A program made the translations under genes and the position numbers. A stretch of 64,000 nucleotides of DNA from Setoptus koraiensis (Eukaryota > Animalia > Arthropoda): positions 12,462,001-12,526,000 of the forward strand of contig CM106585.1 of NCBI GenBank assembly GCA_048013815.1, read 5' to 3'. Under the pieces are notes generated by a model. It did not search any database, was not told the DNA's origin, and worked only from the letters and a program-made list of their open reading frames with translations. Every line of letters begins with the position of its first letter. Within the stretch, counting starts at the first letter, position 1. Positions 12,252 through 55,477 of the stretch are shown here, one piece after another.

Positions 12252-13902
12252 ATGGAATTTTCGTCCGCCGTTGTTCATCACCTGTTGATGATGAGCCGCC
12301 GCCATCGCCGCCGCAGCTCGCCCAACTGCATCTCCAACAATAACAAAGTCGTGTGCTCCAACCAGAGATGCTGTTTTCAATTGCTGGCAACATCGTTTGT
12401 CTACAGCGCTATCATCGCATCACTACTGGCATCAATGTTACACGCCTCAGTTATAAATAGCCACGAAAATTTAAAATTTAAAGAGACCCTCACAAGCACG
12501 TCACATCGCCATTCGAGGCATGACGACAGTGAGTTAGCCGAGGCCTCGCTGGCAGCGCTACCCGATGAGCGGCCACCCAGCGCTCATCGACGGTATCGTG
12601 CCACTAATAATCAAGGCGACAACAACAACAACAGCAACACTTCAACAAGTGATAATGAGACGAGTGAAAAACGCAAATCGCGCTTTAAACGCAATCAAAT
12701 TAATTATTCTAGTCAATCGAGCACTAATGATCATGTGAATACAGTTAACAACAACAACGATGCTGGTTGCCCTTCCAACAAATTGCGAATGTCACTGTTG
12801 CCTGTTGAATTGCAGCAACCGCAACAACAATCGTCCTCCAGAATGGCCAACAACAATAGGCAGACATCGACGTCTGCAGCCGCAGCCGCTTATTGTGAAT
12901 GTCAGTCTGACTTTTTGGGTTGGCAAATCACTTGCTATGATCCTGGTCCCATCCCTTTGTCCATGACAGCATCTAGGCAGCAGCAACAACATAGAGTTAC
13001 TAATAATATTCCACACCAATTTCATCCCGCTTTCTTGTTGAAATCACAACAAAACCAACAAGCTAGAAGATACACAAATAGTAATAATAGATCAAGTGCA
13101 TCGCTGTTCGACGAAGTCAAAATAGATAATAATAAGTCAAGTGACATGATTAATAGCAATACAGCACCATCGTCAAGATTGAAAATATCCAATCTGCTCA
13201 CTAGAAGGACTCGCTCTCTCGCGTCTAATGCTATATCACAGCTTTATAACAGTAACGAAACAAATCCGAACGTCACGCGATCAACTTCGGCCACGTTGAT
13301 TTCCAAATTACCCACAACGGTTCACTTGGATAACGAGAAAGGGCCCTATGCCAACGATGTCAGTGGTGGTGGCTTGTCGAGCAGTGATAGCGCATCAATT
13401 GAAAGTATCGATAATAATAATGGCAATGATCAAGATACAGTGAGTGGATTTGACGCTGACTTGTCTCATGATTTTTTAGAAAATGCAAACAGCAACAACA
13501 ACAATAATAATCACAACAACATGAACTATGGTGACCAAACAAGTAGCACTGAATCGCATCACCATCACTCAACAGAATTCTATAGAAACAACAACAGTAT
13601 TGGTCTAGGTAGTAGCAGTCAGCATAACCAACACCAAATACAAGGTCATCATAACTCACCCGAAGGCAGCCATTTAAATCTGATGCATGACACAATCACG
13701 AACAACGACGACGAAAGCAACCAATCTATGGATGGATTCATATCTTCGCCATCATCGCTGTCATCGTCATCATCGTCATCGGCATCGTCTGTTTCGTTCC
13801 AAACTATACCAAGCTTGTTCTCTATCAAATATTTACGCAACACCAATATCGAGATAGACTGTGATCAACTAGCTCCCAACTATAGGCCAGCAATGTTTCA
13901 AG
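12252..13902 (+). CDS. Tl: Toll receptor, exon 1 (hydrophobic signal/anchor segment and N-terminal Cys cap, interrupted by N/S/Q-rich inserts)
   Basis: 1651-nt reading frame from ATG 12252 ends at CAA G|gtaagt (phase 1). It contains CECQSDFLGWQITC and FSIKYLRNTNIEIDCDQ, the N-terminal cap of protostome Toll-1-type receptors. Confidence 0.8.
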
Positions 13903-16900
13903 GTAAGTTGTATAAATAGTAATAACTTTATTATTATTATCATTATCAGCGCTATATTGCCTTAAAATTGAATGATGTTGCCCCAATAGTAATAACTCAT
14001 AGTTAGTCGAGACTATCAGAGAGTACAATTACTGTTGTGGTTGTAGGATAAAATTAGCCCAACTGCGCATGCTAGAGGAGGACCATGCATATCTAATTGT
14101 GTGTGTGTGTTTAACCGACAGACAGTAATATCTCCATAATAGTATTTTATCCTCCAAATCATGTTCATCATCACAATGGATTTGCGAAGCTACGACTAAC
14201 TTGAGACTGAAATTTAGTTATTCATGAACTAGTTATGAATAACTTTGCAACCTAGAGTGGATAATGATGGTCGTGAGAGCGTTGAAGCGTCAAGTAAAAC
14301 CCAAATATATTGCATCATCATCGAAGGTGCTTAAAGCTTATTATTCATCAAGATAATGCTGCATTAACTGCTGAATTATTATTATTACATGTATTATCTA
14401 TTTTGTCATGCGGTGCCCATAAGGATCATTGTTATTGACAATCGAGATGGATATAATTATCATCATTATTGTAATTTTCTTCTCTTGATGGATACTGATC
14501 AATGGTTATAGTCTGACGCAATCACATTCTAGTACCACATTTGACATCTCATCGAGATAGATATATCTAGTAAGCTACAGCGAGAGTCATAGGCTTGTGA
14601 ATGATGAAACAATCCAGCTACAAGTTTTTTGTTCCTCCATGCTCATGATCATGATATGCATGCATCTAATTTCTTGTATGTAATAGCAGCAATAGTGATA
14701 GTAGTAGTAGTGGCATGGGTTTTTCTGGTACTGTTCTATCTGTATGTCAAAGTAGCTACAGAGAGCATCTTGCGGAGCAGAGCCTACAGTCTACCTTTAG
14801 CCATGTCTAAATCTCATTCATGTTTTTTTATTATTGGTGTGACATTAAGAAAAGAGAGTGGCATCTATATAATACAAGGTCATGAATTTGGGCTTCTACT
14901 CACGCAAAATGCTGATATCGATGGCGATCATCATAGGCTAAGAGAAAATATGATGTGACATACTTTGGAAAGCCATACAAAGTTGTTATGTGAAGTAGAA
15001 ATGTCGCAATAGCATATATATTTCTAGTTTTTACCTTACGAAATATTGCAGATTATGTTTTGCTCCTTACGATGAATAATTGATCACTTTCAACTTCAGA
15101 ATCAAGTGTCAAAGTTGATGGCATCACTTACAATCCATAGTACTGTCAGCCGCTGGCAAGACACTTACGCCGACACCCTTTGTTATGCATGCATGAAGAG
15201 AATTATGAATGGTGCTTCTTATTGTTTTTATTTGGAGAGCAAGATAAAAATCAGATAGGGAGAGAAAGAGAGTTCAACTTTAGTTTAGGTGGGGCACCGT
15301 GTTAGTGCTTCTATCCTTAGCAGTCGAACAACTAGTCAAATAGAGATAGAGAGAAATTTGACTTGTGTGACAGCGTAATTACAAATTAAGAAGAATACTC
15401 ATATAGAAGAAAGAATAATATTATTACGACGACCAGAACGTTCAAGCGCATTGTTATCAAAGATTGAATACTGCAGCCATGATTATCGTATTTCTCTTTT
15501 GGCTTTTTTGGTAGTAGTCGTCGCCTTGTTGGTTTACTGCGCAAGAGGGAGATATAAATGTCAGTGTTGGTTTTAGTGGTCATAATATTCTGCATGAACA
15601 CACAAACACAATTCTAGATGATGATTTGTGCGATAGTCACCAACGCCAAATCAACAGTTTCTTCACCCAAGTTTCCCAGCTCGCACATTATTGTGTGTAT
15701 GTGTTTGCTTGATTAGTTGTCTTGGTATCTTGTCAACGCATTCTACAGATAGACTTGCCATTCCGTAGTGATTACGTCATTACCAATTAGAAGAAAACAA
15801 CGACGACGACAACAACAATCTTCTGGCAATAATGAAAGGCAAGGCGCTTGCACACCACACTGCCACTACTATTACAATAACTTGGTGTCTTCTTGCCTGT
15901 GCATTCGCTCTATGTATAAGGCTAATGTTCGAGCAGGGAAAGGTTCTGCAATATTGTAGGAATGGTCATTAGAATGTTGATAGAAGAGAGTTCAATGAAC
16001 AATTGAGCAGTGCCTAGGAGTGGATAAAAGTAAGGCAGTAAAATACTGCCGATACAACAGCTAATGATACGTAGATCCCTAATGATGACGTGATCTATGT
16101 TGAGCCTGTTAGCTCCGGGGCTTTATTCCGAAGGGAGAAAACCCTCGCCTATTGGTGTCAACAGCAGCAATGATTAAACTAGGAGAGTGAGAGAGGGAGA
16201 GAGAGAGAGAGAGAGAGAGAAAGCGAAATAGATTTTTGTTATTTTTCATTTTCTCACTTCTGCGTTATTTGTTACTTTTATCTGTTGTTCTCGCTCCCTT
16301 TCACTTTCTACACTTTCTCGACGACCAGACAGCTAGACTGTTTGGTGGTGGAAATTGAGTCTGGAGAGTTTCAAGGAGAAAGAGTGTTTGTGGTGACGGC
16401 AGTCGCGCTGGTATCATAAAAGTGCCCAGGCAGGTGGGTATATTTTCGTTGTTGTTACCTGACACTTGCCAGAACTAGTTGCTCTCGAGTGTATAGAATT
16501 TGTTCTCTGCGTAATGGGTTTTCTTGAAGTAGCAGTGGCAACATTCGAGCTAACAAGCAGCAACTACGACAGCAGTTGGAAATTTTACCTTTAGGCCAGC
16601 TTGATAGGTCTGAGTAAAGACAACTATTATGATTTTCGAATTTAACAAATACTCAAAACATGATCAGGCCAATCAGTTATTAGATCAGACACTTTTTGCA
16701 ACCATGCACTTGTTAGCCCAGCACAATATATCGGCAACAACGACAACAAAATTACAACAATATTGCCGGGCGCACAGGCGCACAAACACATATCACATGC
16801 TATTTGTGTTTATATCATTCTAAAAATCTGTTTGAAAAGAATCTACCTGTCAGTTGGTATGGATGAAGCAGAACTGTGTTCACTTTTGCTTGGCATGTTG

Positions 16901-17693
16901 GGTGCGAATTCTTATAGACATTCAATGTTCATTGTTGTATAGACAGTTATAAAGTAGGAAAAGTGACTCGAATCTCAGATTAGTCGTCGGTCTCATTATT
17001 ATTGTTCTGTGCGTTCGATATGATTCGTTGCCGCCATTGCCGCTGCTGTTGTGATTAAAATTGCCAATGCCATAACGACATTCAGTTGGCTATTATTTTG
17101 TAATCGGCATCAATAGGCATTATTTATGTAATAATCTGTGTTTGTTGGTTGAACAACCGAGCGGACACAGATTGCTAATGCTGCCAAAAGTAACACAACC
17201 GGCCAGTCAGTCAAACGGCCATTGGCCTGAGCAACACGTGCACAATGGTCGTCTAAACCGAACTAACAAAAGATGAAGATGATTCACCTGTTGCATGACA
17301 TATGACAGTTGACTTTCTCTGTGAATGTGTATGTCGATCATACGAACACAAAGGACGAGTTCATTCGCAACTATCAGCCAGTCAAACAACTTGGCTGTCA
17401 ATATTGGGTGGTGGCCACTTTGTCAGTTTACCTCACTCATATTGCACATTCCCATTGATTTAAGCTATCTATAACAGGTAATTTTCCAGTTAGTGGGATG
17501 CACAATAAATTAGACCACTTATACTGCAGGCTGCCTACGTGAATAACTCGCCGGTTCAACCTGTTAGCAACTGTACATACATGTCTACTTGTCTGTATTT
17601 CACTGCGTGCCGCCGGGTCACATTGGATGTGTCAGAACAAATCTATTGTGACTTGTGCACATAACGGACAGAATGGCAAGTGGTTCGGGAGAT

Positions 17694-17726
<33 letters not shown>

Positions 17727-18062
17727 AAGAGAGAGAATGGTCGCTTCGTCTTCGCATCCGAGTAAACGGACTACATACCGATAAATGTTGCCAGTGAATG
17801 TTATTATGTTGTGTCAAGCGAGTTAACAAATTAGCTAAGATAAACGAGTGTATATATTATTGCTCTTTAGAAGTCGATTTTTTGATCGAAAATCCTTAGT
17901 ATGTGTCTCTATGTGTGTGAACAGAGCGAGAGTGTCTAATCGAAGTGTAATCAATTGTGGAGACCATATGTGAATGCCGACAAATGCCGACTGTTTATTG
18001 TTGTATAATATTCAATAGACACGGATGGTGTTGATTGTGGTTAGCGAAGCAATTTTTTCTTG

Positions 18063-18063
<1 letters not shown>

Positions 18064-18141
<78 letters not shown>
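18064..18141. repeat. (CT)n microsatellite, about 39 units, in the Toll intron
   Basis: Uninterrupted CT run seen directly. Similar GA/CT/CA tracts lie at about 16190-16220, 17690-17737 and 22278-22308. Confidence 0.95.
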
Positions 18142-18143
<2 letters not shown>

Positions 18144-21100
18144 GTTTCTCTTATCCATCCATCTCTACGCTCGCCCGGTCTCACCAGATAGACCTAACTA
18201 ATTCCAACTACACACAGTTCCGAATCAGCTGCGCCGATTCCCGTCAATTAGTGTCTTTCCATCTCTTTGTTAGTTAGTGAGTAGTGAGGCATTAAGCTCA
18301 TTCGTTTTCTATCTCTCTCTCTCTCCCTGTGAGTGTGTGTGTGTGTGTGTACAGTGGGTTCGTTTAAATATATATAAATGCTCAGTTGCCTCGTTTGTCC
18401 CCGTTATCTCGGGCTTTATTGTGTTCCGCTTGCAATTAGGCGTCAGAAGAAGCGCTAGCAACGCAAGAGCAACAGCAAAAACAGCAACAAGTGGCATGGT
18501 ATCATAGAACATGGCTTGTGGAACGAACAGCTGACAAAGCGATGATCATTAATTAAGATTCGTCGCCGTCGTCGTTGTCTTTTCACTCTACCCACTCGCA
18601 TAATCTTCTTCGCTTCGTTTCGCTCTGAGTTGCCTTGCTAACTTGCCACCAGTAAAGTCCAAATGGGAAAAACATATGATGAAGATTGCCAACTGGAAAG
18701 ACGACAACGACGTAGAAGAAGAAGAAGAAGAAGCAGTTCTACTACGCCTGTTGTAACTCTGATAGATTTGGCACCAACTAAACAACCTACCGGCCAGTCG
18801 ACTGGCCGGCCAGTCCAACTAACAACCTTCTTGTTAGATAGTTTCCTGTGTTATAATTTATCCTATTAGCCTTTTAGTCTAGCTTAATAGATAATTCATT
18901 TGTTTGTTGCGTACATTACTGGCTTCAGTATTGTGAATGTGAGTGTGTGTGTGTGTGTGTCACATGAGCATGTCAGTTGTTGAGGTTTGATTCCCTCCTC
19001 ACCAATGGCGAATCACCAACAAAGCGAGTTATTGCGAGTTATACAGAGTGTGTTCACGCATCGCAGCCATCGTTGCCACTGGCCAGTTATTATTGCCACC
19101 AGCAGTTGTGCGGCGTATGTGCCGCCGGACAAGTCAGTCACGACAACACAACAGTGCTTATTGTTCCTTATGTGACCAATGTCACCACTAATTAACCACC
19201 GTCTTGTCACCTGTGTGCTGGATGTTAGACGCTTCCCTCTGGCCAGTTAGTTCATTAAAGGGGGGACTCTTTCTGCATCACAACAGCAACCTGTCGAGAG
19301 TTTGTTGCTACATAGTGTCTGGTAGAGAGCCAAAAGATAATCAACTGCACTGAGAACAGCAACAACAGCAACAACTCTTAAACTTTATGATGCTGCAACA
19401 CAAGGATGCTGACAATAGGAAGCAAGAGAGTTGTTGTTTGTTCACCGAATTTGATTCAATTTGACCATCGTCGTCAACATGAGCTGTTAACTGACTGTCC
19501 GACCGAATGTTTGTCCGACTGTCTAACCGAATGGAAATAAAATAGAATCCTGTGCCATGTTCGCTTCAACAACGCGAAGCAGCAACGACAAACAGTCAGC
19601 ACAACTAATAGGCTGGCCCTCGCAAAGAGACAAGTTTCTTTTGTGCGCCCAAATTTGATACTTCCTGTTTATTTACCAAGCACACACACACTCACACAGT
19701 TTCGTCAACGTCGTGTCTGTTTTATTGAACCGACATTATCAATCGTGCAAATTTGCATATTTAACTGCTGCCCCATTGCATGTTATTTGGGCATGTTGGT
19801 TGGTGTGTGTGTACTCACAAGTGTTAGACATATACTCACACAACAGTAGCGCCTCGAGCTGCCCACATGAGCTCAGTGGTCCATATAAGCTAGTCATAAT
19901 GTGAGGATATTGGGAATTCACTCTATTTGAGCACACAAAACATGCTAGCAGTTCGTTGGACAAACAACACACATCGACAAGCGATTACAAGCTAAGAGCA
20001 AGAACGCCAACCAACTGGTCATCATTCATTGCAGGCAAAAGTAGTCAAAAGCCAAAAGTAGATCGCTCGCATTGCACGACGATGATGATGATTGATTTTC
20101 GGGCAAATACAAGTAGAAAAAGAGCGACGACTGAATGTGGGGGGGGGAGAGAAAGAAAAAAGAACAGAAAATGCCAACAACAAATGTTCCCTGGTTTGTC
20201 CGATGTAACTCCAACTATTTGATTGTTGTTGTTGTTTTAAGCATCATGTTGCATGCAAAGCGCTTTGTATTGTCTCGATGCGGCTATTATACCCCTCTCG
20301 AATCAGCAGCGGCCACACACACGCTGACCGGCGACAGGCATTAGCTAATGACTCGTCTTGATATGTCTATCTCTTTCTCTTAATGTTGACCATTGATAGT
20401 CAGCCAGCTGGTAGCAAGCGAATCGGTGGATCGGTGGTCAAAAATAACTGTGTCAGTGTGTGGCCTGATTTGATTATTAGTAACAAACATCGGCAGCAAC
20501 GGCAAGTCAGTAAATGAATGAGCAATTGAATGTGTGTGTGTTTACATTTTGAGATAAATGCTGTCGCAAAACCAATTGCAACGAATGGGTGAGGGAAAAA
20601 AGTCACTTGACCTGGCGGGTCATTCATGTTTCTATATCGTAAGCTCAAGATTATTATTTGCTTGCACTGCTGTCGTTGCTACTGGAGGCAATTTGCCCAT
20701 GCTAGCAACATCGTCAAGAGAGAAAAGGTGAAAATTACGAATTGTTTCTTTTCGGAGTGAGAGAGAGAGAGAGGCATTCAGAGAAAGATACAAGCAGCAC
20801 TCTTATTACGGCTATGGCCTATGGCAACACACACACACACACTCATAGACACAAGCAAACACAGGTTGTGGCGTTTAGAGGAAAACGACAGTAGCTTATT
20901 GTTGTTGTCGCTTGATTCGCTCTGTTTGCTAATGTTGCTCAAGTCTGTCGAGCTGGTATCACGTTGATCAACTTGATTGGTTTATGTCGAACTTGGCACA
21001 GGCAGCACATTAATCTAATAATAGTTAATAGTCCCTAGATAGTTTATCGAACTAGCAACTTTTTCTTGATTCTCTTTTAATTCCCGCCTAAAATAACTGT

Positions 21101-21302
21101 CTTTACATGTAATGTTCTACCACCTGAGGGGCTTCGTGATTTATGAGAATAAAAGAACTGCACACACACACACTTTGAGAGACACTTGACGAATATCTGT
21201 GTCGTGCTGTTCTGATCAATCAATCAGCTGGAGGTCGCCCATTGCGCAACAACAAAGCATATCGCACCCCAGCGATATATCATATATGAATGATTGTCCA
21301 TA

Positions 21303-21597
21303 TAAAGGGTGTTTCAATCAGAACCTGGATTTGAACTGATTATGCTACGCTGCCTTCCACAGTGCTTTATTTTTCGATATTTGTCGATGCATTCTGGAAG
21401 CTACAGCGTGCAGAAAGAGACTATGTGCAGCGCGAAATAATTAGTTGTGCCAAGCGAATGGGACTTTTCTCGACCTCAACACAGTCTATCTGATTTGTTG
21501 TGCCGAATTTCATTTGATCACCACTTCGGAAAGAATATGTGCTAGCGAGCAGCACAGTGTGTTTTATTGATCCAGGTTCTGATTGAAACACCCTTTA
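21303..21597. mobile_element. Non-autonomous Tc1/mariner-type MITE (291 bp between TA target-site duplications)
   Basis: Perfect inverted repeat: ATAAAGGGTGTTTCAATCAGAACCTGGAT (21302-21330) versus ATCCAGGTTCTGATTGAAACACCCTTTAT (21570-21598). This reads as a 26-bp TIR flanked by TA at 21303-04 and 21596-97. No internal ORF. Confidence 0.8.
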
Positions 21598-22279
21598 TGT
21601 ATTGTTTTTCAGCGTATGTCAGCGTCGAGCCGAGCGTCTTGCAAGTGCACAAATTATCGCCAAGTTAAACTAAAGCGATTGCATACAAAATGCCGACGGA
21701 GATGGTCGCTGGCTGATGTGAGAGTGTTGATTAACTTGACTTTTGTGTTCTTGTAATCACTTAATTGACTAACAATAGCACTATTGTTGTTAATCAATTA
21801 ATTGTATTGCAGACGGAGGAGCCCTGTATTCAATGTGTCCCCCGCTTTGTGGAGTGAGAGCGCGTGCTCGCTTCGAGTGGGCTCAAGTGGGCTCATTTGA
21901 ATCAGCCGACTGGGAGTGTTGAAATGGCTCGCAACAGGTAACAACAAATACTACCAACAATTGCAAGAACTCTCCTGATAGAGCTCTCAAGATCATCATG
22001 CCACCGACATGTAAATGGTAGTACAGTGAGCATGATGGAAGTATTAGAAAATCTCTTTTTATCTGGCATGGCTGCTCTTGGCAGCTAATAATAGCCGTGC
22101 AGCGGCTTTGTGCCGCCTGATAGGCTGCCGCTGGTGCCTTGGTTGTTGTTGTGGGCCTGGCAACAGACGCCATCAGACGACCATCACACAGCCATGGACG
22201 AGAAAAAATTGTTCGCCAATTTATATTTGCCAGAGAGAGAACTTTGCCTAACTCGCCTGCTCGCTTTACTCAAATCGCT

Positions 22280-22310
<31 letters not shown>

Positions 22311-23581
22311 CAGTTCAGTGTCAAGTGTTTCTCTCTGTTTGGCCCATTGTTCGGCGCGCTGGAACTAGGCCAATGGTTTCATTTGCATACACTATCTATA
22401 TATAAAGCATAAATTGATAGACGGCCCGAGCCGTGCTATTGATGTCGCTGCCATTGATGGATGCATGGACATGGCGAATATTCCAACTGCCGCTAAAGCA
22501 GCGCCATGTTTGTGCGCTGGTGCTCCAAGATAATAGCTGCGTGTGTGATTTGCGCAAAAAATAGTGCCCATTCCAGCGCTGTCCCCTCTGTGTCTTGCGA
22601 GTCACAAGTTGTGTGACACACAAGCGTCCTGTGGGTAAGTTACAGCAGTTAACATTCAGTTCGATTGGCAACAGTTCTACATTCTGGATGGAGCGGCCAG
22701 TTACAGTTCGCTGGTGTGGCGCTGCCGATTCAATGTCGCGCTCACCAATTGGCTGGCTCACTATTGGTGGCGCACTCGCGTATCGAGGCCGTGTGTGATG
22801 AGTTGCTGTCGTTGGTGCTGGCATGCGGCGCGGTCGCGTTCCGTTGTTGACGCATCGATATTATAGCGAATATAGCGCGATGCGCGATGGCGCGTAACCG
22901 GCCGCTACACACACGTTGCCAAGGCCTGTAGCCCCTGGGACAGCACACAATCGAATTATTGCACACACGATGGCATGCATCGTGCCGGATCGAACTTTTG
23001 TGAGCACTTTGTCGGTGAGATTGTCGGCAAGACACAATAGGGGGACACCGGCAAAAAGTTCGATTTTCGGTGCTCGATTTTGCCATTGTGCCACCGTGGG
23101 CCACTCATACAAGAGGAAGTAATTTAGCTATTAATAATGGCGGCCGTGGGGGGGTGGGACGGCGGCCATTGTTGTCGAAGCGGCCAGATTCATGCCGGGC
23201 AACAAACGACCATTGTGCGCGTGAACGGGACAACGCAGCCAATTTAAGCAGCAGCAGCAGCGGTAATAAAATGATGCAAGTTCGGCATGGTCGCCGTTAA
23301 TCGTCGATACTTACTCGTCGATTTAATTCGGCTATCGGCCAACCTGCACACAGTTGCATAATGCAATAATTTTCAGCAACAAGTTCCACTAACCTGCACT
23401 ATTCAATTTGCCCAACTCAAACTAACAGTCTCTCTAATTCTCATCTCTCTTATTTAAATTATCTCGACCCCTCTTATTGCGTTATCATTCATTCGCTCGC
23501 ATAACATATTATCGTGTTACCTGCGCCCTGATGCGTGATGATGACACTCAACAACAACAACGACAACAACAACAACGACAG

Positions 23582-26500
23582 GCTTCAATGTGGACGAAAT
23601 CGGCACCTTTACTCTCAACAATTGCCCATTGCCACCAATTCCGTTTAGCGTGATATTCCACAGGCAACAAATTGTCGGCACGAATCAACGCAACAAGCGC
23701 AATCATGTGATGGCGATGCACGATCACACAATCGACAACAACAACGACAGCAACAATGCAATTGAGCCACCAAACGATGACCAAACGACAGCTTATGACG
23801 CCAGGCAACAGAGGCGACGCAGAGTTGACGAAACTAGCCACAACAATCCAACTGGCGCCAATGCATCGCCAACAATGGCCAACGCCAATCAACAGCAACA
23901 GATTGCTCCGGCGGAGCCCAGTGTCGTCAAGAGTCTCACTATCAACCTGAATACAATTGTTGATCAACGAACGCTTGTAACACTGTTGACCGGATTGGAC
24001 TCTCTAGAGGAACTTGCGCTCAATTACATGCAGCTCGCGCTTAATTTTACCCAATTAGAGCCACCTATGGCTGCTAGTGATCTGGTCGCCGAACCAACCA
24101 ACGCTCAAACTACACCGCATCCGTTGACATCGCCCTCAAATCATCATCACAACAATCAAATAAACAACTTTACCAATGCCGATGACACTGCCGTTAGGCA
24201 ACTACAATCAACAGTATCATCGGCCCAATCACTTCTGCTTCCGTCCGAGTCAACTCAACAATTATCTAGGGTCTTGGCCAGTGCGCAGCAGTTGTTACAC
24301 GCGAGCTCGGCGATGTTTGCAACATCTCAGAATCCCCCTCTAACCCATTCTATAAACAGCACGTCGTCGTCATCGTCGATGCCAGCATCAAGCCACCACC
24401 AGCCAACCACATTGGTGACAACCACAACTACAACTAATACGCCACCACCGACAACAACCACCAATGGATGGTCAACAACGGTGCCAACTGATACCAGCAT
24501 TGTCGTCGGCCAGCCGGCCAACACAAACAACAATGGTGCCGGTCAAACCACTAGTCAAACGGCGACAACGACGACATCAACAATAGGCCAGACAGCTACA
24601 AGTAATGGACAGAACCAAACTCAGCTTAGGAACACCCCAGTGAATGCTAACAGCAACAACAGTAGGGATCGCTTGTTGGCAACACCTCGTGGAAACATCC
24701 TGCTGCACTTAGGCTCTAACTCGCATCATAATTCATATCAACCAAGTGGTACCACCCAGCCTACTGCTACTGTCACGAACAACACCAACAGCATATCAAC
24801 AACTAATGGTGGCGCTGTCGATTACATTAGTCACACTCAACCGATCAATTACAAACAACCATCGACATCATTCTCATTAAATACTGCAACTGCTAATACT
24901 GTTGCTGCAAACACCGCCACTAATTATCCATCTCATCCGTCATCGTTGCCCAGTCACAATAATAATATAAATCAAAATAATCAGAATACAGTTAGTGCTG
25001 TTAGCTCTAGTCAAATATTGTCATCTATATCATATACGAATAACAATAACAACAATAACATTTTTAATGTTAATAACAATCAATCACCCTCATCAAATAA
25101 TAATAATAATAATAATAACAACAATAATGGTATGATGAATACCAATAGTAGGATACGCCAGCCAATTATCACAACCACTGCGATTAATCAAGTTCCACCC
25201 GGTGGTAGAATCCTACAACAAGCTAAGACCGGCTATACTACTCCTCATGATGGCTCAATCTCGAATACTGTGACAGCTCCAACCATTATGATGACTACAC
25301 CAACAACTGGAAATCATAACAGTATCACTAGCAATAGTAATAACAATAACAACAATAATAATAACAACATCAACAATAATAATGGTAATAACTTTGGTGT
25401 GAGAACCTCGTCCACCAATGGTCAAACTATTTCGCCACCGATAAATACATTGAGAGCGCGCCAAACAACAAATCAGTACACAACTACTGCAAACAATAAC
25501 AACAATAACAACCTCAACGGTTTAAACAATAATGATGTATCCACCACTTCCTCTAATATGTTTGGGACAAATCATCAGCAACACATGCATTTTTCTCAGC
25601 CGAACGAGCAGGTTACGACAGCGTCAACTGCACAACAACAACAATTCGTTAGGCCAACAACCACCACGCCCAGCTCTAGTCAAACAATCATAGCAACAAC
25701 AGGTGGTCAGACCAACAGTAATTTTGCTAATCTACATCGTTCCTCTAATGGTCTCAATGCTTTCTCGGGATACAGCAACAACCAGCAGGCTGCTGGTTCC
25801 AGGTTGAGCGGTACCTCATCAAGACGCTTTTCATCATCCTTGGGTCCCTCTACATCGTTTATGACGACATCAGCATCAGCTGGTTCCAATACTAATAATC
25901 CTACAACAAATAACAATCATAATCTGATGGCACAAACAGAGGCTCTACATCACTATACTCAAACAGCAAGTGGTCCAACCACGGGTTCTTCCTACTATAG
26001 GCCGTCACAGTCAGCTTTGTCGACATTACAAAGTGAGAATAGCTTACAATATCCTCAGTCAACAACATCGAATCTCTATTCTAATCAACCGGCTGGGGGA
26101 ACAAGCACTAACGGTGTGCCGTCACAGACAACAAACCATGGCGATTTGCTAAGATTGAAAAGAAGCAGTAATGTAGAGTTTGAATTGTCTTTTGGAGATT
26201 TACTTCCTAATCTACGCTCATTGAAACTAGAATCTTTCATTGATATGTCTGTGTTGAATCAGGTCCTGCAACGTGCCGCAACTTCGTCTTCCCAGTTGTC
26301 GATGCATTCAGCACCATCATCAACAACAGCTTCGACTCCTATCTTAAACACTACACCAGCGCCCATTGCAACGACGTCCAGTACTGTCAACAATCGGTCC
26401 GGTCCTGTCAGGGTACAACATTTGAAGCCGGTAGCCTTCTCTTTGACAACAGAAAACCAAACTTCTACCACGCGATCGCCTTCCGCTATAGCTAGTCCAA

Positions 26501-29500
26501 GGCACGTGGCTGCAGCAGCAAATCTAGTGCGCCGTCAAACTAGTCCAGCCACAAGTCCTCGCCGGTTCAGGCGCCAATGGTCATCGGGTGACATGCCTGA
26601 GAAAGATGAGACTTTCGGTGAGGGCGACGAGAATGCGCTCGGTACAAACAATGGACAAGATGATTCCCTGATGATGGAAGAATCCAATGTGCATCACAAC
26701 GTAATGTTGGCCTCATCTCCATCTTTGGCATCACCTACTTTGTCAACTGCATCATCAAGTAGATGGCCCGCATCAATGGAGTCAAGCCACTACTACGATG
26801 ATGACATGACAGGTGGTTTACCAAGTCAAAGTGGCCCTTCTGAAGATGACACGAGTTTAACGGAAAGTAGTCCCGAAAGTAGACAAGACAATTCAGATTT
26901 GAATGTTCAAGCGGCAATAAATGACGCTGCATTGTCTAACAATTTACTAGTTCAACAGTATTCAAGTATACTCATCAAATTATTCTCACATTTGACCAAA
27001 TTGAAGATACTGCAATTAGTTAGCAATGATCTACCCTACTTACCCGACAACTTATTAAATGATTCGCATCACTCACTGCAACGTTTATATCTGATGTCAA
27101 ACAAGATACGTTACGTGTCGGATGACGCATTACAACAGCAACATCATTTAGAAACACTCGATTTAACTAACAATCAGTTGAGACAGTTGTCACCAAAAAT
27201 TTTCAGGGATACTCAGAATCTCAAACAATTACGACTTCGTAGAAACTTACTCCGTTCTGTACCATCTAAATTGTTTGCGTATAATCAAAACAGATTGGAG
27301 ATAATAGACTTGGCTCAGAACCGTCATCTCAAACAAATACCCCTGGATCTTTTCTCATCCGCTGGTCTCAGTGTAACAAATTTAACCTTCAACGACTGCC
27401 AATTGAACGACTCATTGACAGCCCGCTCACCAGATCAATTATTTGCGTCCTTGCCAAATTTGATTGATCTCAACCTACAAGGTAATAGATTGCGTTCACT
27501 ATTGGCTAATGCAAATCTGTTTGCACGTAACAATCGTCTGCAGCGCATCAATATCAGCCGAAATCAGCTCAATCAGCTCAATGGAAATCTTTTCAACCAA
27601 AATGGTAGTCAAATTATTGAGCTCAATCTTAGTCATAACAAACTACAAGATCAATTGCCCAACCAATTTCTATTACATCTTAGGAAGTTACGTAAGCTGA
27701 ATCTGAGCCACAACAGATTTACACAGTTGCGATCCAATTTATTTGTTACTAATCAGCAATTGGAATATCTAGATTTATCACACAATCTACTTACCACTAT
27801 TAACACGGCCCAATCGCAGAATTTACCATTTGGATTGGGAGCCAGTCTGAAGTCATTGCAACTATCGCACAACAACCTTAGTCAATTCACTGAAGATATC
27901 ATCGATATCAACTGGACATTTTACAGTAAGTTACAGTTATTGGACCTGAGTCATAACAAGTTTGTTGGTAGGATATCAGTGCCAATATTTTACGTTATCA
28001 GTGATGAGTTGCATTTCAATTTAGGCCACAATTTTATCACCACCTTGGATGTACAAGCGTTGATGCAGCACGAGCAAACTCTCAGTCAATTTGCTAATAT
28101 ATCCCCAGCTTCGACAATTGATATGGTATCAGTCGATCTGAACACTGAATTTGAAAAAGATCGAAGACGTGAGCAGCGTCAGGTTACCACGGCTAAATTA
28201 CCTATTGTCGATTTTAAATTAACAGGTAATCCCATAGTGTGTGACTGTTTACTTGAACCTTTGGTGAGCTACTCACGAAGGGTTGCTGCAGCTACTAATC
28301 CTTCTGTGGCTGCCTCGATATTTTCATCTAGCAATGAACCTGCTTCAGCACAAATTGACTCTGCAACATCCACGGCAGCGGGATCTCGCTACTCGCTTTC
28401 TAATGGCGGAGCCTCCAGTAGCAGTACAACTACCTCGGCATCTACAGGAAAACAAAAGGCACAAATCAGCAGACAATCAGGAGTGCAGATCTTCTATCAG
28501 TTCAAGTTCAATGATCTATATTGTGCGCAACCGGTATCATTGCAGCAACAACTATTGAATCACGTCTCCATTGGAGATTTATTGTGTCCCATCAAGGACA
28601 CTAAATTATGCCCAAGCGAATGCCAGTGCCACTATCAATCGTCCTTCAAGACAGTTATTGTAGACTGTCACAATAGGAAATTAAGCACTATACCAAAGCA
28701 GTTGAGTCATATGGATAATTTCATACATTTTAGTGCTCAACCAGCCACATCGAGCTCTAACAAAATAGATGATGCTTCCACTGAGGCTCTGAGTAATATA
28801 TCCGATATTGACAAGCTGATTATCCGGCTTGATAGTAATCAACTCACCAACATGGATGCTTTGAGTCAACTATTCCAACCCATAGATGCCAATGATGCGA
28901 TTAATAACAATAACAATAACAATAATTTGCTGATGTCAGGCAACAATGCTGCAACATCATCGACGTCCGCAGACAATACGGAAAAAATGGAATCGACTGT
29001 TGTGACAAGCCAACCACAACGTCGCCAAGTTACAGTCACCACTCGGCCTCAGTCTCAATCTCTGACCATGGCAGCAAGAAATCAATCTGCACAAATCAAT
29101 CCGGAATCCGAGAATGCTACAAATCAAAGTAATAACCAAAAGAAAGTATTAATGTCACCTGTAGCTATGGGAAGACAATCGAACCAGAATAAACTATTAA
29201 CAAGACCGATTAGAAAGGCGTCGGTACAGCGCAGACAAGTTTGGATGCCGGCAACAACAGGCAATTCAGATGATGGTCTTTTAATGGAACCGGGCGCAAA
29301 TACTCAACATGGTGGCTTCGAAGTGGTTTTGGAGACATCAGAAGTATACAGATCCAAAAACTTCATGATGACATGCGAATTGTACTTAGATAACAATCAG
29401 ATAGAGACAATTTCCGACAGGTTTTTGCAACTACTGGATAAGATACCACAAACTTCGATGTCTTCTACAATGGGAATGACCTCACCTCAGTCAGCACTCC

Positions 29501-31950
29501 CCACCTCAATGCTAGCTCCGCCTCTTCACACTAAAATCAATGATGCTGTTGAAACACCGGTCATTGGTAATACAGTTAGTGAGAATGCGGGCGTCGATAA
29601 CAATCCCGTTCTTCCGCTGGGCACGAGAATCCCCAAACTGATGGCTGGGGGTGGTGATGAGCCTGGCATTAACGGAAATCAAGAGATTTCCCTATCAAGT
29701 ATGAGGAAAATCATGGTCCTGCCATCCCTGAAGATACTATCTCTAAGGAACAATCGCTTGCAATCCATTTCGAGCCAGACATTGAATCGTCTTAGTAAAC
29801 TTATCAAGTCCAGTCATACTAAGATATATCTTGGTCATAACCCGTACAACTGTAGTGACAATTTTTCGCCGGCCTCACAACAAAACTCGCAAGACCCACT
29901 GTTAATAAAAACTGATGAGCACCAAGCTTCCTCAGCATCAGCCTTGAATGATATCTCCAGTTCAGCTGTGCCTATGAATAACTTGTTGGAGCCGGCTGAA
30001 TGTCCGGTTGGACAACTCAAGAATTGGCTAACAGTGAATCACAACAACGTAGGAGATTTGGACGAAATCTATTGCACGCACATACCGGACGATCTGTTAG
30101 CAAAAATTGCGCCGGCACATGCAAACTCTAGATCGAACGGAACCACCAGTGAAGACCAGAGAAAGAACTTGAGTCCTCATTCGACTGACTCTAGTTTGGA
30201 CGAAATAAGCACCACGACTGCTAATTCAGTGACTGGGTCCCAGTCCAGTGAACCATCGACTTGGGAGCACGAACATCCCTGGTCTGGTTCATTGGCGATG
30301 TCAAGTAGCGTGGACAAAGCCGTAGTAGTTAGACAGAATGGTACCAATTCTAGCAACTTAGTGGGTGGAGATCAGTCGATGGCACCATATGTGAAACTGA
30401 TTGAAATCAATCTCTACGATCTGTGTCCTTATTCACCAGGTCTGCAACTGCAACATTTGGCTGGCCAGACTGGACTACTTTCTGCAAAGAGCCAACAAAT
30501 TTTGTTGAGTTTAACGATAGTGTTTATCTTGTTGACATTGTTACTGTTGATAATACTTATATATTTCGGTGATTATCAAACAATCATGGCATTCATCTAC
30601 ATACATATGCGACCCATCTATGTGTGTCTCAATCTTAACGAATCACATTTGGATGGTGATAAATTATACGACGCATTTGTATCATACTCAAGTTCTGATC
30701 GTGATATTGTTATGGAACTAATTGAAAAGTTGGAACAGCAGCAAGTGAGTTTAAATACTTCAGCTCCTACAAATCAGAGTGCTTATGACAACGTTGCTGA
30801 TGTCCTTGTTCAAGACTCCGACATATATTTCAAGCGAAATGTGCAACCACCGCAACCTCAGAGTAATAACCAACTACTGCAACAGAGAAGGACAAATTCG
30901 TTTCAAGATTTAAATACCATGACCAGATCAACAAGTCGCATAATGATGAATGAAGACAGTGCCTCGTCTATCGATCAGATTAACCAGGTGGGGTCAGTTT
31001 CAGATTGGACAAAGCACGAAGAGGCAAATGCCAAACAAAAGGAGTCAACAGGTTATAAGTTGTGCATACATGAACGTGATTGGCTTCCTGGCCATTTGAT
31101 TAGCTGGAATATAGTTAATTCCGTGCAGAATTCGCGCAGAACAATATTAATTCTATCTAAAGAGTTTATACAATCCATATGGTTTAAAGTGGAATTTCAC
31201 ACTGCTTACTATCAAATGTTGGAAGATAAAATTGATAGATTGATTGTGATAGTGCGAGGCGAAATGCCCCCCAAGGAAGAAATGGACAAGGACTTAGCCT
31301 TCCTTCTAACTACAAAAACCTATCTGACGTGGGGCGAAAAATGGTTCTGGGAGCGGCTCCATTATGCTCTGCCTCACAAATCAATGCCACCGCCATCAAA
31401 AATGGTTTCATCTAGCAATACACTGGTAGATTTAGCTAAAAAGAAGCAGAGACTAGCTAAGCGACAGCAACAGCAAGTACATCAAACACCTACACCTCAG
31501 AAGCCTTTACTAATGTCTAGTATAGGCAAGGATTGCTCTAATCTACTTTTACCGATTCACCAACAGCAGCAACAATCTCCGTTAAATACTAGAAGCAATA
31601 GTCAAGTGCTTATGCAAACAACTGAGAATCTCGGTTCGCCTCAGCAGACTTTGGAGATCACTAGGAGTAATGATCAACTGATGAATAGCACTGATAGTGG
31701 TCGAGCTACATGCAGCACTCTCACCGGCGGTGGTGTCTCTTCAACGCGCATTATGGTAAAGTCTAATCCCGATATGAGTGGAAACCTTAACCCATCATCT
31801 AATGAAAATGCAAGCAATGGAACGTTGATAGCTGCGCCAGTGCCTAAATCTAAAGTGAGAACAAACAAAACTGCTGGCCAATCGCAACGACAGCTTCAGA
31901 ACTATGTTGACAAGACCATCAGCAATCATTTTAATCTGTCTGAGCTTTGA
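23582..31950 (+). CDS. Tl: Toll receptor, exon 2 (LRRs, two Cys clusters, TM helix, TIR); full protein about 3,339 aa
   Basis: Acceptor gacag|GC TTC (phase 1) joins ...MFQG|FNVDEIGTFTLNNCPLP. LRR block at ~26970-28080; GNPIVCDC...CPSECQC...VDC LRRCT/LRRNT pair; second LRRCT GHNPYNC...DLCP; TM at ~30505-30570; TIR from DKLYDAFVSYS through KLCIHERDWLPG to WFWERLHYALP. The two-cluster architecture is Toll-1 type; exact orthology is not established. Confidence 0.95.
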
Positions 31951-40596: not shown

Positions 40597-42988
40597 TCAG
40601 TAGAATTGGTGCGACTTGTAGCCACTTATGAGGCTCAGCACACTTAAAAAGGCGCTTGCGGTGGCCGCCAACAAGACGGTCAGGTTTATGAGTACCACTG
40701 GCAGCTCAATGCGATGGTAGCAACTCGAATAGGAACTAGGCGACTCCGTGCAGTGACCGTACTCACTTCCGTCGGATCTAATTCCCACGCTTGGTTGCGG
40801 GCAGCACGATTTTGGATAGGAATTTTTGTCGGGCGACAAAACGAGCCATTCGTTTTTGTTGTCCAGACCGCAACACTCGAGTCTGCTCTGCAGATTGTCC
40901 CAAAATTGGGTGACATTCCTCTCAATATTCTTCGTAGAGTCTTGCCCTCCATCCCTGTGCGCTTCCTCCGAGGCTTGTGGTTGGGGTTGTTGTCCGCCCT
41001 CAGTGCCCACCGGAGACGGCGCGGTGGCGCCCCCACTCGAGTCACCATTGACCGGCCGTTGGGGTTCAACAGCAGGGGGCGTGGTGTCCTCATTCGGACC
41101 ACCGCTGACCGGTCGTTCAGCCTGATTCGGCTTCTCCGGCGATTGCGGTTGTGATGGTTGTGACTGCTTCTGCCCTTGACCGTCAGCGGTGCCCCCCGCA
41201 GAAGGCGTGGCGGCCTCATTCGGATCAATGCTGACCGGCCGTTCAGCCTGATTCGGCTTCTCCGGCGATTGCGGTTGTGATGGTTGTGAGTGCTTCTGCC
41301 CTTGACCGTCAGCGGTGCCCCCCGCAGAAGGCGTGGCGGCCTCTTTCGCGTCAGCGGTGACCGACTGTTCAGGCTCCGCCGCAGAAGGCGTGGCGGCCTC
41401 ATTCGCATCAATGCTGACCGGCCGTTCAGCCTGATTCGCTTTCTCCGGCGATTGCGGTTGTGATGGTTGTGAGTGCTTCTGCCCTTGACCGTCAGCGGTG
41501 CCCCCCGCAGAAGGCGTGGCGGCCTCTTTCGCGTCAGCGGTGACCGACTGTTCAGGCTCCGCCGCAGAAGGCGTGGCGGCCTCATTCGGATCACCACTGA
41601 CCGGCCGTTCAGGCTCCGCCGCAGAAGGCGTGGCGGCCTCATTCGCATCAATGCTGACCGGCCGTTCAGCCTGATTCGGCTTCTCCGGCGATTGCGGTTG
41701 TGATGGTTGTGAGTGCTTCTGCCCTTGACCGTCAGCGGTGCCCCCCGCAGAAGGCGTGGCGGCCTCTTTCGCGTCAGCGGTGACCGACTGTTCAGGCTCC
41801 GCCGCAGAAGGCGTGGCGGCCTCATTCGCATCAATGGTGACCGACCGTTCAGCTTGATTCGGCCTCTCCAGAGATTGCGGTTGTGATGGTTGTGACTGCT
41901 TCTGCCCTTGACCGTCAGCGGTGCCCCCCGCAGGAGACGTGGCGGCCTCATTCGCCGGAGGAGGCTTGGTGTCTTGAACCGAATCACTGCCGGCCTGCCC
42001 TCGATCCCTTCTCGCCTGCTTCGGGGATCGCTGCTGCAGTTTCTGTGGAGATGTCTCCTGATTAGGATGTGGTGGTGGTGGTGGTGGCTGTGGTCCAGGA
42101 TGTGGTGGTGGTATCTTTGGAAGTACGGATCGTTGGATGTAACTGGCAAGCACCGCAGCGGGCTCCGTGGCGTCTTTGATTAGCGTGGAAAGTATGCCGC
42201 TATTTCTGGTCAGTCGGATGGTCAAGGTGGCCGGCGACTGCGACGACAACGACTCTTCTTTTGGGGCCTTCTGCTGTCTGTTCGCCGGATCGCTCGTGTG
42301 TGTGGGCCCGGCTCCTGGCAAATTGTCATAGTTAGTTGTGGATGATGCAGCTTTTGGCGTGCTTGTAGCATCACTAATGTGTGACCAATCGTACTTATCC
42401 ATGGCCCCGTCAAACTCATTGCCCGGCTTGATGGTATCTCTGACATTTGGCACGTAATAAACGACAAACAATAAACCCAGTATCATGTTGGCGATGCACA
42501 AGCCTGAAAGCTGCTCACACAAAGGTCAATCATACAAAGTTCAAGGTGTAATTGATTAGATATTGTCCGTAGTTACTAGCTTGGTGGCTTTTTGTAATTA
42601 GAGCGCGAACGCCCGAGGCATTCAGTGCTTAAACGTATAAATGACGAGTGCTTATAAATCCACTTACCAGTTTAATGAGGCCCCTCCGTTTATATATTGA
42701 GCCAGTGCAGCCAATCATGCTCAACAGTAGCAGATAGGCTGCGGTCAATAAGAGCCAAGTGGTGTAAAATCGGGGCCATTGATTGTGCTCGCCGAGAGTG
42801 GAAAAAACATCTCTAAAGCAGACGAGCAATCCTATTATCAGAATGGATATGAAGGCAAGTGACACACTGCCAACTAACAGGATGAGTCGACAGGATTCCC
42901 AAATAAACGAGATTATCCTTTCGAGAAACTGAACTATTCGAGAGAATAATCCATTTATTGAATCGATTATACCCTTGTTGCCTCGCAT
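40597..42988 (-). CDS. Divergent tetraspanin B with a ~480-aa repetitive insertion in EC2; join(42988..42668, 42510..40597), ~744 aa
   Basis: Exon 1 encodes TM1-TM2 (...LSMIGCTGSIYKRRGLIKL|gtaagt). Exon 2 encodes TM3, the insert, FWDNLQSRLECCGLDNKNEW...YPKSCC...C...SC and TM4. Same intron position and phase as tetraspanin A. The start codon could lie further upstream. Confidence 0.88.
41071..41928 (-). repeat. Coding higher-order minisatellite of 126-nt (A) and 57-nt (B) units in the order A-B-A-B'-B-A-B-A-A
   Basis: A = GGTADGQGQK[H/Q]SQPSQPQSPEKPNQAERPVSIDANEAATPSA (42 aa). B = AEPEQSVTADAKEAATPSA and B' = AEPERPVSGDPNEAATPSA (19 aa each). 5x126 + 4x57 = 858 nt. Confidence 0.95.
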
Positions 42989-53022: not shown

Positions 53023-53063
<41 letters not shown>

Positions 53064-54914: not shown

Positions 54915-55477
54915 CTTGCTGAAAATTATCACTACTATATTACCTATCCAGTGAAAACTTTGTCGACCTCTCTTTATGACACATAAACTAGACTACTGCA
55001 AACATCGGATTTACTCTTACTCTCGCCGCGTCTCAAATCACTGAATTGATCAAGTCGATGATCTCTCTCAAAGGTGGTCATTCTCTAAAATGCCCAACAG
55101 GCCATATAATCTATTATGTAATTGTGTTCACTACATCCAATCACATAGATCAGTATGTCAAAAGATGTCTGATGTCTGATCATTGGATGTTGCAAAGACT
55201 AACTAAACAAACCGAAATGAAAAAAGTTTCACTCTCCCACTTTCAATAGAGAGATTCGAACAAACAGTTGGTTCCTTCTTTATCTTATGGCCACCAGTAC
55301 GGACTATATGAAGAATAATACCCCGTAGATCTTATCGAAAGAAAGATAGAGACAGCACAAGCTTTGTGCGCAAGTCCAACAAAAGAATCTAGCCAAAACA
55401 CACGACATCTAGTGAACAAGGTAACAAACGTTATACATAGAAACGCTTCAAAGTTTTTATAGCTGCATAATGAAAAG

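Follow-up and report, generated by a model that had tools for sequence, protein, structure and literature searches.

A giant Toll-1-like receptor gene in the eriophyoid mite Setoptus koraiensis, probably intact and expanded by in-frame disordered loops

In Drosophila Toll and Aedes Toll5A (PDB 4lxr/4lxs, 4arn, 7b1b), an N-terminal cap (N-cap) with a CxC...C pattern and a C-x27-C spacing accompanies the following domain order: an N-terminal leucine-rich repeat (LRR) solenoid, an internal LRRCT-LRRNT pair, short membrane-proximal LRRs, an LRRCT, a transmembrane (TM) segment and a TIR domain. Vertebrate TLR7, TLR8 and TLR9 carry a disordered insertion in the LRR solenoid, the Z-loop. In human TLR7, furin-like convertases cleave the receptor along the secretory pathway, and its N-terminal fragment stays bound (PMC4432728). 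Among acariform mites, orthologous receptors are encoded in Panonychus citri (LOC128387182, 1,891 amino acids (aa)), Brevipalpus obovatus (LOC141851707, 1,674 aa) and Blomia tropicalis (KAJ6220444.1, 1,628 aa), where databases label them only "uncharacterized", "hypothetical" or "TIR domain-containing". Here we describe a gene in a 64,000-nucleotide stretch of Setoptus koraiensis DNA (assembly GCA_048013815.1, contig CM106585.1, positions 12,462,001 to 12,526,000, forward strand; hereafter the window) that very probably encodes, intact and in two exons, a 3,339-aa Toll-1-like receptor whose loops have been expanded by in-frame disordered sequence.

The window protein shares with the two insect Tolls the N-cap CxC...C, the C-x27-C and the domain order. 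It differs from them in being three times longer, with about 65% of exon 2 (1,801 of 2,786 aa) made of spacer vs 14% in insect Tolls, and, unlike them, it has single LRRs standing 200-700 aa of disorder apart, a last LRRCT whose CxC is split, and a 93-aa insert in the TIR domain. Roughly two thirds of its 3,339 residues are low-complexity loops between folded pieces.

The gene was assembled from two + strand open reading frames (ORFs), 12252..13919 (555 aa) and 23590..31950 (2,786 aa). A donor, CAAG/GTAAGT, lies at 13902/13903 and an acceptor, ...acag/GC, at 23581/23582; both are phase 1, the codon split by the intron is G/GC (Gly), and exons 12252-13902 and 23582-31950 join in phase to give a coding sequence of 3,339 codons. 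Read exon by exon, the junction is CDQLAPNYRPAMFQ-G-FNVDEIGTFTLNNC, that is, C-x27-C. The features are as follows.

12252..13902, + strand: exon 1, 550 codons plus 1 base, with conserved pieces also found in exon 1 of the related eriophyoid contig L006 and in Brevipalpus and Panonychus proteins; in order, a signal-like segment, a low-complexity leader, the N-cap first half, an insert of ~282 aa and FQTIPSLFSIKYLRNTNIEIDCDQLAPNYRPAMFQ (13797-13901)
12765 and 12894-12938, + strand: N-cap first half in exon 1, GCPSNKL and CEC...ITCY, respectively
12945..13796, + strand: N-cap insert, ~282 aa, exon-1 aa ~232-513
13903..23581, + strand: single phase-1 intron, 9.7 kb, GTAAGT...ACAG
23582..31950, + strand: exon 2, 2,788 codons plus stop, the remainder of the Toll protein
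23582..23673, + strand: N-cap second half, G-FNVDEIGTFTLNNCPLPPIPFSVIFHR, predicted local distance difference test score (pLDDT) 78-92
23674..23895, + strand: insert 1, about 74-86 aa vs about 6 aa in insect Tolls, pLDDT <50
23896..24036, + strand: island A, LRR1-2, VKSLTINLNTIVDQRTLVTLLTGLDSLEELALNYMQL, two strands, pLDDT 89-96
24037..26169, + strand: insert 2, after LDSLEELALN, 711 aa, N/T/S-rich, pLDDT 30-40
26152..26163, + strand: furin-type motif RLKR, just ahead of island B
26170..26295, + strand: island B, a lone LRR (LRR3; LLPNLRSLKLE), NVEFELSFGDLLPNLRSLKLESFID..., pLDDT 81-97
26296..26919, + strand: insert 3, about 208-235 aa depending on the choice of island end, eriophyoid-specific
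26563..26574, + strand: second furin-type motif RFRR, followed by the conserved DMPEKDE
26920..28314, + strand: main LRR block of ~15 repeats with the opening part of the first C-terminal Cys cluster (NPIVCDC), Pfam LRR_8, pLDDT about 90-97
28315..28485, + strand: insert 4, within the first Cys cluster, 57 aa vs 0-6 aa in other mites
28486..28890, + strand: end of Cys cluster 1, second LRRNT (CPSECQC...VDC) and first membrane-proximal LRRs, invariant Cys columns, pLDDT 85-97
28891..29349, + strand: insert 5, between membrane-proximal LRRs, 153 aa
29350..29454, + strand: lone membrane-proximal LRR, CELYLDNNQIETISDRF
29455..29706, + strand: insert 6, about 84-117 aa
29707..29874, + strand: last LRRs and first Cys of the membrane-proximal LRRCT (GHNPYNC)
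29875..29991, + strand: insert 7, splitting the LRRCT CxC, 39 aa (13-14 in tetranychoids, 0 in insects)
29992..30432, + strand: remainder of the LRRCT (ECPVGQLKNWL...YC), a disordered stalk and the conserved juxtamembrane LYDLCPYS
30496..30570, + strand: TM segment, ILLSLTIVFILLTLLLLIILIYF, ~24 hydrophobic residues (exon-2 aa 2304-2327) read from the sequence, conserved in all relatives
30652..31407, + strand: TIR domain with box 1 DAFVSYS, box 2 RDWLPG and box 3 WFW, Pfam TIR 1.5e-12
30760-31038, + strand: TIR insert between helix A and strand B, 93 aa
31408..31947, + strand: cytoplasmic tail, 180 aa, with short conserved motifs (MSSIGKDCSNLLLP; C-terminal ...HFNLSEL)

Several lines of comparison indicate that the two exons form one gene. 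In L006, an exon-1 equivalent lies 2.4 kb upstream of a giant ORF and ends in IEIDCDQASPNYKPAMLQ followed by G/GTAAGT; the acceptor there is ...TTTCCAG and then G-FNVNEINSFAFNNC, so that codon and phase are identical to those of the window. The P. citri protein (P0125), mapped on its own genome, comprises two exons split at the same joint by a phase-1 intron, and exon 2 of Brevipalpus begins at the position equivalent to window exon 2. Moreover, the N-cap is contiguous, with the PAMFQGF joint and an exact C-x27-C, in P0125, in the B. obovatus protein P0127 (both orthologues with NCBI gene annotation) and in P0128, whose cluster contains Blomia tropicalis proteins. Exon 2 has neither an ATG start nor a signal sequence of its own; the hydrophobic signal-like segment, read from the sequence at exon-1 aa 42-66 behind a long basic n-region, comes from exon 1. 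Because of the L006 exon pair, the contiguous N-caps, the P. citri and Brevipalpus mappings and the lack of an own start in exon 2, we read exons 1 and 2 as a single intact gene. The first-pass annotation, a reading of the letters of the window, had proposed this same splice, a protein of ~3,340 aa and a Toll identity, and had named C-x27-C as the spacing of Drosophila Toll; the intron shared with L006 and P. citri, together with the contiguous N-caps, bears out the splice, the count of 3,339 codons agrees with the size, and the 4lxr sequence does have 27 residues between the two Cys, which along with the tree described below places the protein with the Drosophila-Toll type. The window's own protein was not among the matches of the length-matched protein search, so the gene is without independent annotation.

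The inserts likewise read as translated, in-frame coding sequence. All of them (about 1,800 insert codons) contain 0 in-frame stops, although stops are abundant in the other five frames. Insert 2, with 690 codons, has per-frame counts of 0, 23 and 76, where composition predicts ~35 (P(0) ~7e-16), and for exon 1 the counts are 0 in frame vs 21 and 66 in the other frames. In four further eriophyoid loci, whose sequences have turned over, the equivalent frames remain open for 2,433-3,023 codons. Between the close variants P0001 and P0254 we counted 27 substitutions and five indel events, the latter all in frame and located in S/N/G runs, and zero frameshifts. The conservation of the frame across the inserts makes their removal by splicing very unlikely. 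Their coding strand is A+C-rich and Tandem Repeats Finder (TRF) reports just short trinucleotide arrays of the (AAT)n and (CAA)n type, which fits slippage-driven growth.

In Pfam searches, exon 2 matched LRR_8 (3.1e-26), TIR (1.5e-12) and TIR_2 (6.8e-11), with LRRNT at 21.2 bits falling under the cut-off of 25.8, and its PDB sequence matches include Drosophila Toll and TLR TIR domains; the Pfam search of exon 1 gave zero matches. The Toll-family features are present, namely the LRR solenoid, a single TM helix and a TIR with boxes 1-3 (interrupted by the 93-aa insert). An internal LRRCT-LRRNT pair, NPIVCDC ... CPSECQC ... VDC, divides the ectodomain, and its Cys columns are invariant in 25 sequences. 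As for the N-cap, the window has the CxC...C and C-x27-C, and the corresponding spacing in other insect and Daphnia Tolls is 24-29 residues. In a tree of 36 Tolls (quick IQ-TREE, 955 columns, midpoint root, Shimodaira-Hasegawa-like approximate likelihood ratio test (SH-aLRT) supports, no bootstrap), the seven eriophyoid giants (the window, L001, L003, L004, L006, P0121 and P0122) formed a single clade (SH-aLRT 100), in which the window branches as sister to the remaining six. The giants and the tetranychoid and astigmatid orthologues together made up a 12-row, long-stemmed mite clade (SH-aLRT 100), which grouped with pancrustacean "protein toll" sequences as against the long Tolls (Toll-6/7/8, Tollo) with an SH-aLRT of 99. 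We therefore regard the protein, with the same good confidence as the explanation as a whole, as a candidate 3,339-aa type I receptor of an acariform orthogroup related to Drosophila Toll, "Toll-1-like" and not a long Toll. The sole other named "giant" TIR-LRR match, P0123 of Centruroides vittatus (3,715 aa), carries the retrotransposon-type domains PF07727, PF14223, PF13976 and PF22936, and it is probably a fusion produced by annotation rather than a genuine giant Toll.

The conservation profile against four giant relatives consists of sharp islands with unalignable stretches between them. In exon 2, the islands are aa 1-28, 103-149, 861-902, 1111-1575, 1633-1767, 1921-1955, 2040-2095 and 2135-2178, and conservation extends to the TM helix, to both halves of the TIR and to short motifs in the tail; an E-INS-i alignment of 16 sequences (the window and 15 relatives) gave the same picture. 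Two AlphaFold2 (AF2) models were built, the first of exon-2 aa 1-1200 from a 16-row alignment (predicted template modelling score (pTM) 0.50) and the second of aa 1101-2300 from 25 rows (pTM 0.64). In the first, pLDDT exceeds 80 only at aa 1-30, 105-155, 861-900 and 1111-1200 and is <50 elsewhere; the second shows the same island-and-loop pattern, with pLDDT >90 over about 15 repeats. On structural comparison with all of the PDB, 150-162 residues from across the first model superposed on contiguous ~165-residue stretches of LRR proteins, including the N-terminal domain of Drosophila Toll, residues 96-264 (Z 13.5, root-mean-square deviation 2.2 A, 162 aligned). The largest island in aa 1-1200 has only 90 residues, so a single solenoid in the model has to be built from several stacked islands. 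The best match of the second model was the ectodomain of Aedes Toll5A (Z 28.6, with 592 residues aligned, model 23-1181 to chain 182-784) and, after it, Drosophila Toll (Z 23.4, 573 aligned, both LRR domains). These superposition ranges suggest that the islands stack into a Toll-like ectodomain from which the inserts emerge as disordered loops.

Here too the first-pass annotation had pointed in the right direction. It described the conserved pieces as islands in disorder, which agrees with the AF2 scores (islands >80, inserts <50); it placed inserts in the N-cap, after LDSLEELALN, after LLPNLRSLKLE, in both Cys clusters and among the membrane-proximal LRRs, all recovered, at coordinates agreeing with those it gave, in the alignment with the 15 relatives; and it asked whether the solenoid would reassemble once the inserts were removed, which in prediction it does even with the inserts left in (Toll5A, Z 28.6). 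The 93-aa TIR insert and the long tail go beyond what it had listed. Its proposed comparison with other mite Tolls, now carried out, found the N-cap, the C-x27-C and the LRR2-LRR3 insert again in acariform orthologues.

That comparison separates an older from a newer layer of inserts. Spacer lengths, and their share of exon 2, are distributed as follows.

LRR2-LRR3 loop: eriophyoids 470-749 aa (the five covering it); tetranychoids/astigmatids 153-379; insects about 10
LRR3-to-main-block loop: eriophyoids 104-235 aa; tetranychoids/astigmatids 0-2; insects 0
Cys-cluster-1 insert: eriophyoids 46-59 aa; tetranychoids/astigmatids 0-6; insects 0
TIR A-B loop insert: eriophyoids 85-124 aa; tetranychoids/astigmatids 39-87; insects 0
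All spacers as a share of exon 2: eriophyoids 52-67% (window 65%); tetranychoids/astigmatids 25-42%; insects 14%

The N-cap insert runs to ~282 aa in the window, compared with ~95 aa for L006 and 25-35 aa among tetranychoid orthologues. In every acariform orthologue, the CxC motif of the membrane-proximal LRRCT, which reads NPxxCDC in insects, is broken up as NPYNC...[insert]...EC (29860-29998 in the window), the gap measuring 13-14 aa in tetranychoids and 39-88 aa in eriophyoids. The P. citri, B. obovatus and Blomia tropicalis proteins thus resemble that of the window in their two-exon structure and intron position, N-cap, LRR2-LRR3 insert, TIR insert, split CxC and tail motifs, but their inserts are 2-5 times shorter, and they have none between LRR3 and the main block or in Cys cluster 1. 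These distributions suggest that the insert set arose in an acariform-wide Toll-1-like orthogroup of 1,600-1,900 aa and was inflated further in eriophyoids. In the tail, a motif, MSSIGKDCSNLL(L/F)P, at about 31510-31551 is kept across the giants, and the C-terminus ...NLSEL (31927-31947), which resembles a class I PDZ-ligand, is present in 7/7 eriophyoid proteins; the tetranychoid and astigmatid orthologues end in ETET or ETNT instead.

Convertase-type sites, R-x-[KR]-R, number only 2-5 per giant protein, and they persist where the surrounding sequence has turned over. The first (RLKR in the window) lies 5-16 aa ahead of the lone LRR3 in 7/7 eriophyoid sequences, and the second (RFRR in the window), after LRR3, is found in all seven in the context RF[KR]RQ[FW]..D.PEKDE. 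Shuffling of the spacers gave per-sequence chances of 0.0002-0.011 (first site) and 0.007-0.03 (second site), values that overstate the surprise if multiplied, the seven sequences being related. A single R-x-[KR]-R occurs early in the same loop in 4/5 non-eriophyoid orthologues; theirs is thus a lone motif near the beginning of insert 2, whereas that of the window stands at its end. A further R-x-[KR]-R, the third, placed in insert 5 at 54-87 aa ahead of the lone membrane-proximal LRR, was seen in 5/7 eriophyoids (L001, L003, L004, L006 and P0122) and is missing from the window protein and P0121. The two flanking furin-type sites suggest TLR7-like processing. The likeness to TLR7/8/9 is one of mechanism, by analogy, and not of membership: in both, disorder is inserted in the LRR solenoid, and the window protein has conserved R-x-K/R-R sites in loops between LRRs; the Z-loop, however, is solitary, measures a few tens of residues and lies midway along an endosomal receptor of a single domain, whereas the window protein has many loops of up to 711 aa and is of the Toll-1 type, its cleavage being predicted from motifs.

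Taken together, an intact two-exon gene for a loop-expanded Toll-1-like receptor is the explanation we favor. Its product would keep all canonical modules (signal-like segment, N-cap, LRR solenoid, Cys clusters, membrane-proximal LRRs, LRRCT, TM and TIR boxes 1-3), while at least 10 surface loops or linkers would have been expanded by translated low-complexity, N/S/T/Q-rich sequence predicted to be disordered. The LRR2-LRR3 loop, the TIR A-B insert and the split CxC, seen in spider-mite, flat-mite and Blomia orthologues, would form the older layer, to which eriophyoids would have added extra inserts while enlarging the old ones, the likely route being in-frame indels of the slippage type, as one part of a tolerance of loop inflation that extends across the genome. 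The folded pieces would stack as a normal Toll ectodomain with the loops extruded, and the two R-x-K/R-R sites around LRR3 would probably be cut by a proprotein convertase in the secretory pathway, leaving the ectodomain multi-chain yet assembled, as in human TLR7. Ligand-induced dimerisation and TIR signalling might then proceed as in other Tolls.

Several considerations weigh against this explanation. The 41 residues ahead of the signal-like segment make an unusually long n-region, and the N-termini of L006 and Brevipalpus are more clearly signal-like. The gene model of the window was drawn entirely from genomic DNA and comparison, and the exon 1 and exon 2 proteins were searched separately, with models built of exon 2. 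The AF2 alignments were shallow (16 and 25 rows), and stacking was read from superposition ranges, not from coordinates. The stem of the mite clade is 1.04, so long-branch effects could affect the Toll-1-like placement. As for cleavage, it is predicted from motif conservation among seven related sequences, and the second site of the window lies 107 aa past the island vs 21-43 aa in the other giants.

A more ambitious version of the preferred explanation holds that the giant precursor is cut at its loop sites into a three-chain ectodomain, with processing at one site extending to the acariform orthogroup as a whole, and that the S/T/P-rich insert-2 loop, mucin-like in character throughout the acariform orthologues compared, is a functional spacer or a releasable N-terminal cap module gating ligand access. 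The motifs leave this conceivable, and we consider it rather unlikely. If true, it would provide a protostome Toll-1-type counterpart of TLR7/9 Z-loop processing. The acariform receptors, with their loops and conserved convertase-type sites, make it testable whether processing of Toll ectodomains exists beyond the vertebrate endosomal TLRs.

Somewhat less likely again is an idea going back to the first-pass annotation, which takes the inserts for a mucin-like shield, adaptive and O-glycosylated, masking or gating the N-terminal LRRs that bind Spaetzle. The ligand-binding end of the Toll-Spz complex (4lxr/4lxs) is the N-terminal part, and insert 2 sits between LRR2 and LRR3, within the portion that superposes on Drosophila Toll 96-264. 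In the eriophyoids that cover it fully, insert 2 is the most S/T/P-rich (37-46%) and least charged (5-10%) spacer, and it stays S/T/P-rich in tetranychoid orthologues though unalignable with them. In the window it is 37% S/T/P but also 25% N/Q. Similar low-complexity inserts, however, occur in the cytoplasmic TIR and tail, where a glycan shield is impossible, and insert lengths vary 2- to 5-fold between species. The TRF search for mucin-type P/T/S tandem repeats found none, just short trinucleotide arrays, which counts against a shield and by which a tandem-repeat (mucin) origin of the inserts was ruled out. Neighboring membrane-protein genes are, in addition, equally inflated. Among the ORFs of the window, the low-entropy share is 57% for a tetraspanin and 52% for Bib vs 0-22% for CSN1, endoplasmin and a proteasome subunit.

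40597-42519, - strand: tetraspanin ORF, matching only positions 123-201 of the 225 in the Pfam profile
52077-54929, - strand: Bib/MIP ORF, matching only positions 1-114 of the 222 in the MIP profile

These partial matches are consistent with large in-frame inserts that split both domains. Like the Toll, tetraspanin and Bib are conserved membrane proteins whose extracellular loops carry low-complexity inserts in frame; the Toll exceeds the other loop-inflated cases here in length, and inserts interrupt its repeat solenoid at many points, as opposed to the one loop of tetraspanin- and Bib-type cases. The mucin-shield reading is thus not needed to account for the inserts, although a mucin-like property of insert 2 alone is possible. 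We see the window Toll as an extreme instance of a lineage-wide tolerance of loop inflation, set atop an older and possibly functional set of loops, and most of the insert length may well be neutral.

Much less probable is an origin of the inserts as former introns that became coding through lost splicing. The idea draws on the reported loss of most introns in eriophyoids (PMC11879100, a gapless two-chromosome eriophyoid genome). Against it, a single exon covers everything homologous to exon 2 in P. citri and B. obovatus, with zero introns at the insert sites, and the largest insert and the TIR insert are already coding there. Since tetranychoid exon 2 is uninterrupted, the inserts do not stand at old intron positions, and an exonised-intron origin was ruled out for the window Toll.

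Only marginally weaker is the proposal that the gene model is an artefact, with some or all of the inserts being introns, or retained introns, and the real protein a Toll of ordinary size. In its favor, the model was drawn from genomic DNA and the inserts are unalignable between species. Yet the absence of in-frame stops vs dozens in other frames, the open frame of the four other eriophyoid loci and the in-frame indels of close variants all oppose it, as do the NCBI models of P. citri and B. obovatus, which place shorter inserts at the same sites within one uninterrupted exon, and the intron-poor state reported for eriophyoid genomes (PMC11879100); we give it very little weight.

The least credible alternative, that exon 1 is a separate gene or non-coding and exon 2 a 5'-truncated or decaying Toll, draws on the lack of a Pfam match in exon 1, on an intron very long for such a genome and on the failure to find an exon-1 equivalent within 6.7-8.3 kb upstream in L001, L003 and L004, and is given almost no weight because the end of exon 1 is exactly the sequence that precedes the exon-2 start in the contiguous Panonychus, Brevipalpus and Blomia-cluster proteins, because L006 has an equal exon pair 2.4 kb apart in identical splice phase, because exon 2 has no start or signal sequence of its own, and because islands and TIR are strongly conserved (TIR 79-88% column identity).

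A 9.7-kb intron is long for a type of genome reported to be intron-poor and compact. The first intron measures 2.4 kb in L006 and about 0.5-1.1 kb in tetranychoids. In L001-L005, the 6.7-8.3 kb upstream yielded just low-complexity noise in place of an exon-1 equivalent; with L001, L003 and L004 among them, a long first intron seems to be shared with these eriophyoid loci. A search of the window intron for nested genes or RNAs returned ORFs all <=142 aa and zero Rfam families; it contains (GA)n/(CT)n arrays at 16183-16220, 17689-17736, 18064-18141 and 22280-22308, and may hold regulatory DNA.

With respect to existing gene calls, the prokaryote-style predictions P0004 (L003 7808-16603) and P0001 (L004 8309-17380) begin 731 and 564 codons, respectively, downstream of the true exon-2 start; in both L003 and L004 the frame is open from the acceptor onward, and P0255 (2,931 aa, JGI) represents the complete ORF of the L003 species. 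Elsewhere in the window, an endoplasmin/Gp93-type HSP90 gene (60628-62880, + strand) forms a single uninterrupted, intron-less ORF. Its best named match is that of Aceria tosichella (74%), with other arachnids at <=65%, which places the window in an eriophyoid mite; among Logan proteins, about 40 match at 68-77% and one (P0134) at 96%, and because of this last identity we conclude that a close relative of the window mite is represented in a public run.

The A. lycopersici genome paper never mentions the words Toll, low-complexity, immune or disordered, the telomere-to-telomere eriophyoid paper (PMC11879100) never mentions Toll and uses "low complexity" solely for a genomic repeat class, and a full-text literature search for eriophyoid and Toll gave nothing relevant. 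Protein loop inflation is thus not discussed in the two searchable eriophyoid genome papers; what is new here is the proposed acariform-wide origin of the insert set with its eriophyoid inflation, and the pair of furin-type sites around a lone LRR. Because an induced antibacterial response is reported to be absent in spider mites (PMC5474072), a developmental role of the window Toll would be as likely as an immune one.

This case illustrates the degree to which an LRR solenoid, its Cys-knot caps and even a TIR domain tolerate interruption while the folded pieces stay strongly constrained, and it can serve as a natural test system for how discontinuous repeat proteins fold. It is also a well-anchored example of genome-wide loop inflation in the very small, streamlined genomes of these mites, in which homology-based gene models will tend to break loop-inflated genes. 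For the receptor family, it marks out an as yet unnamed subfamily of acariform Tolls in which loops are built in and convertase-type sites conserved.

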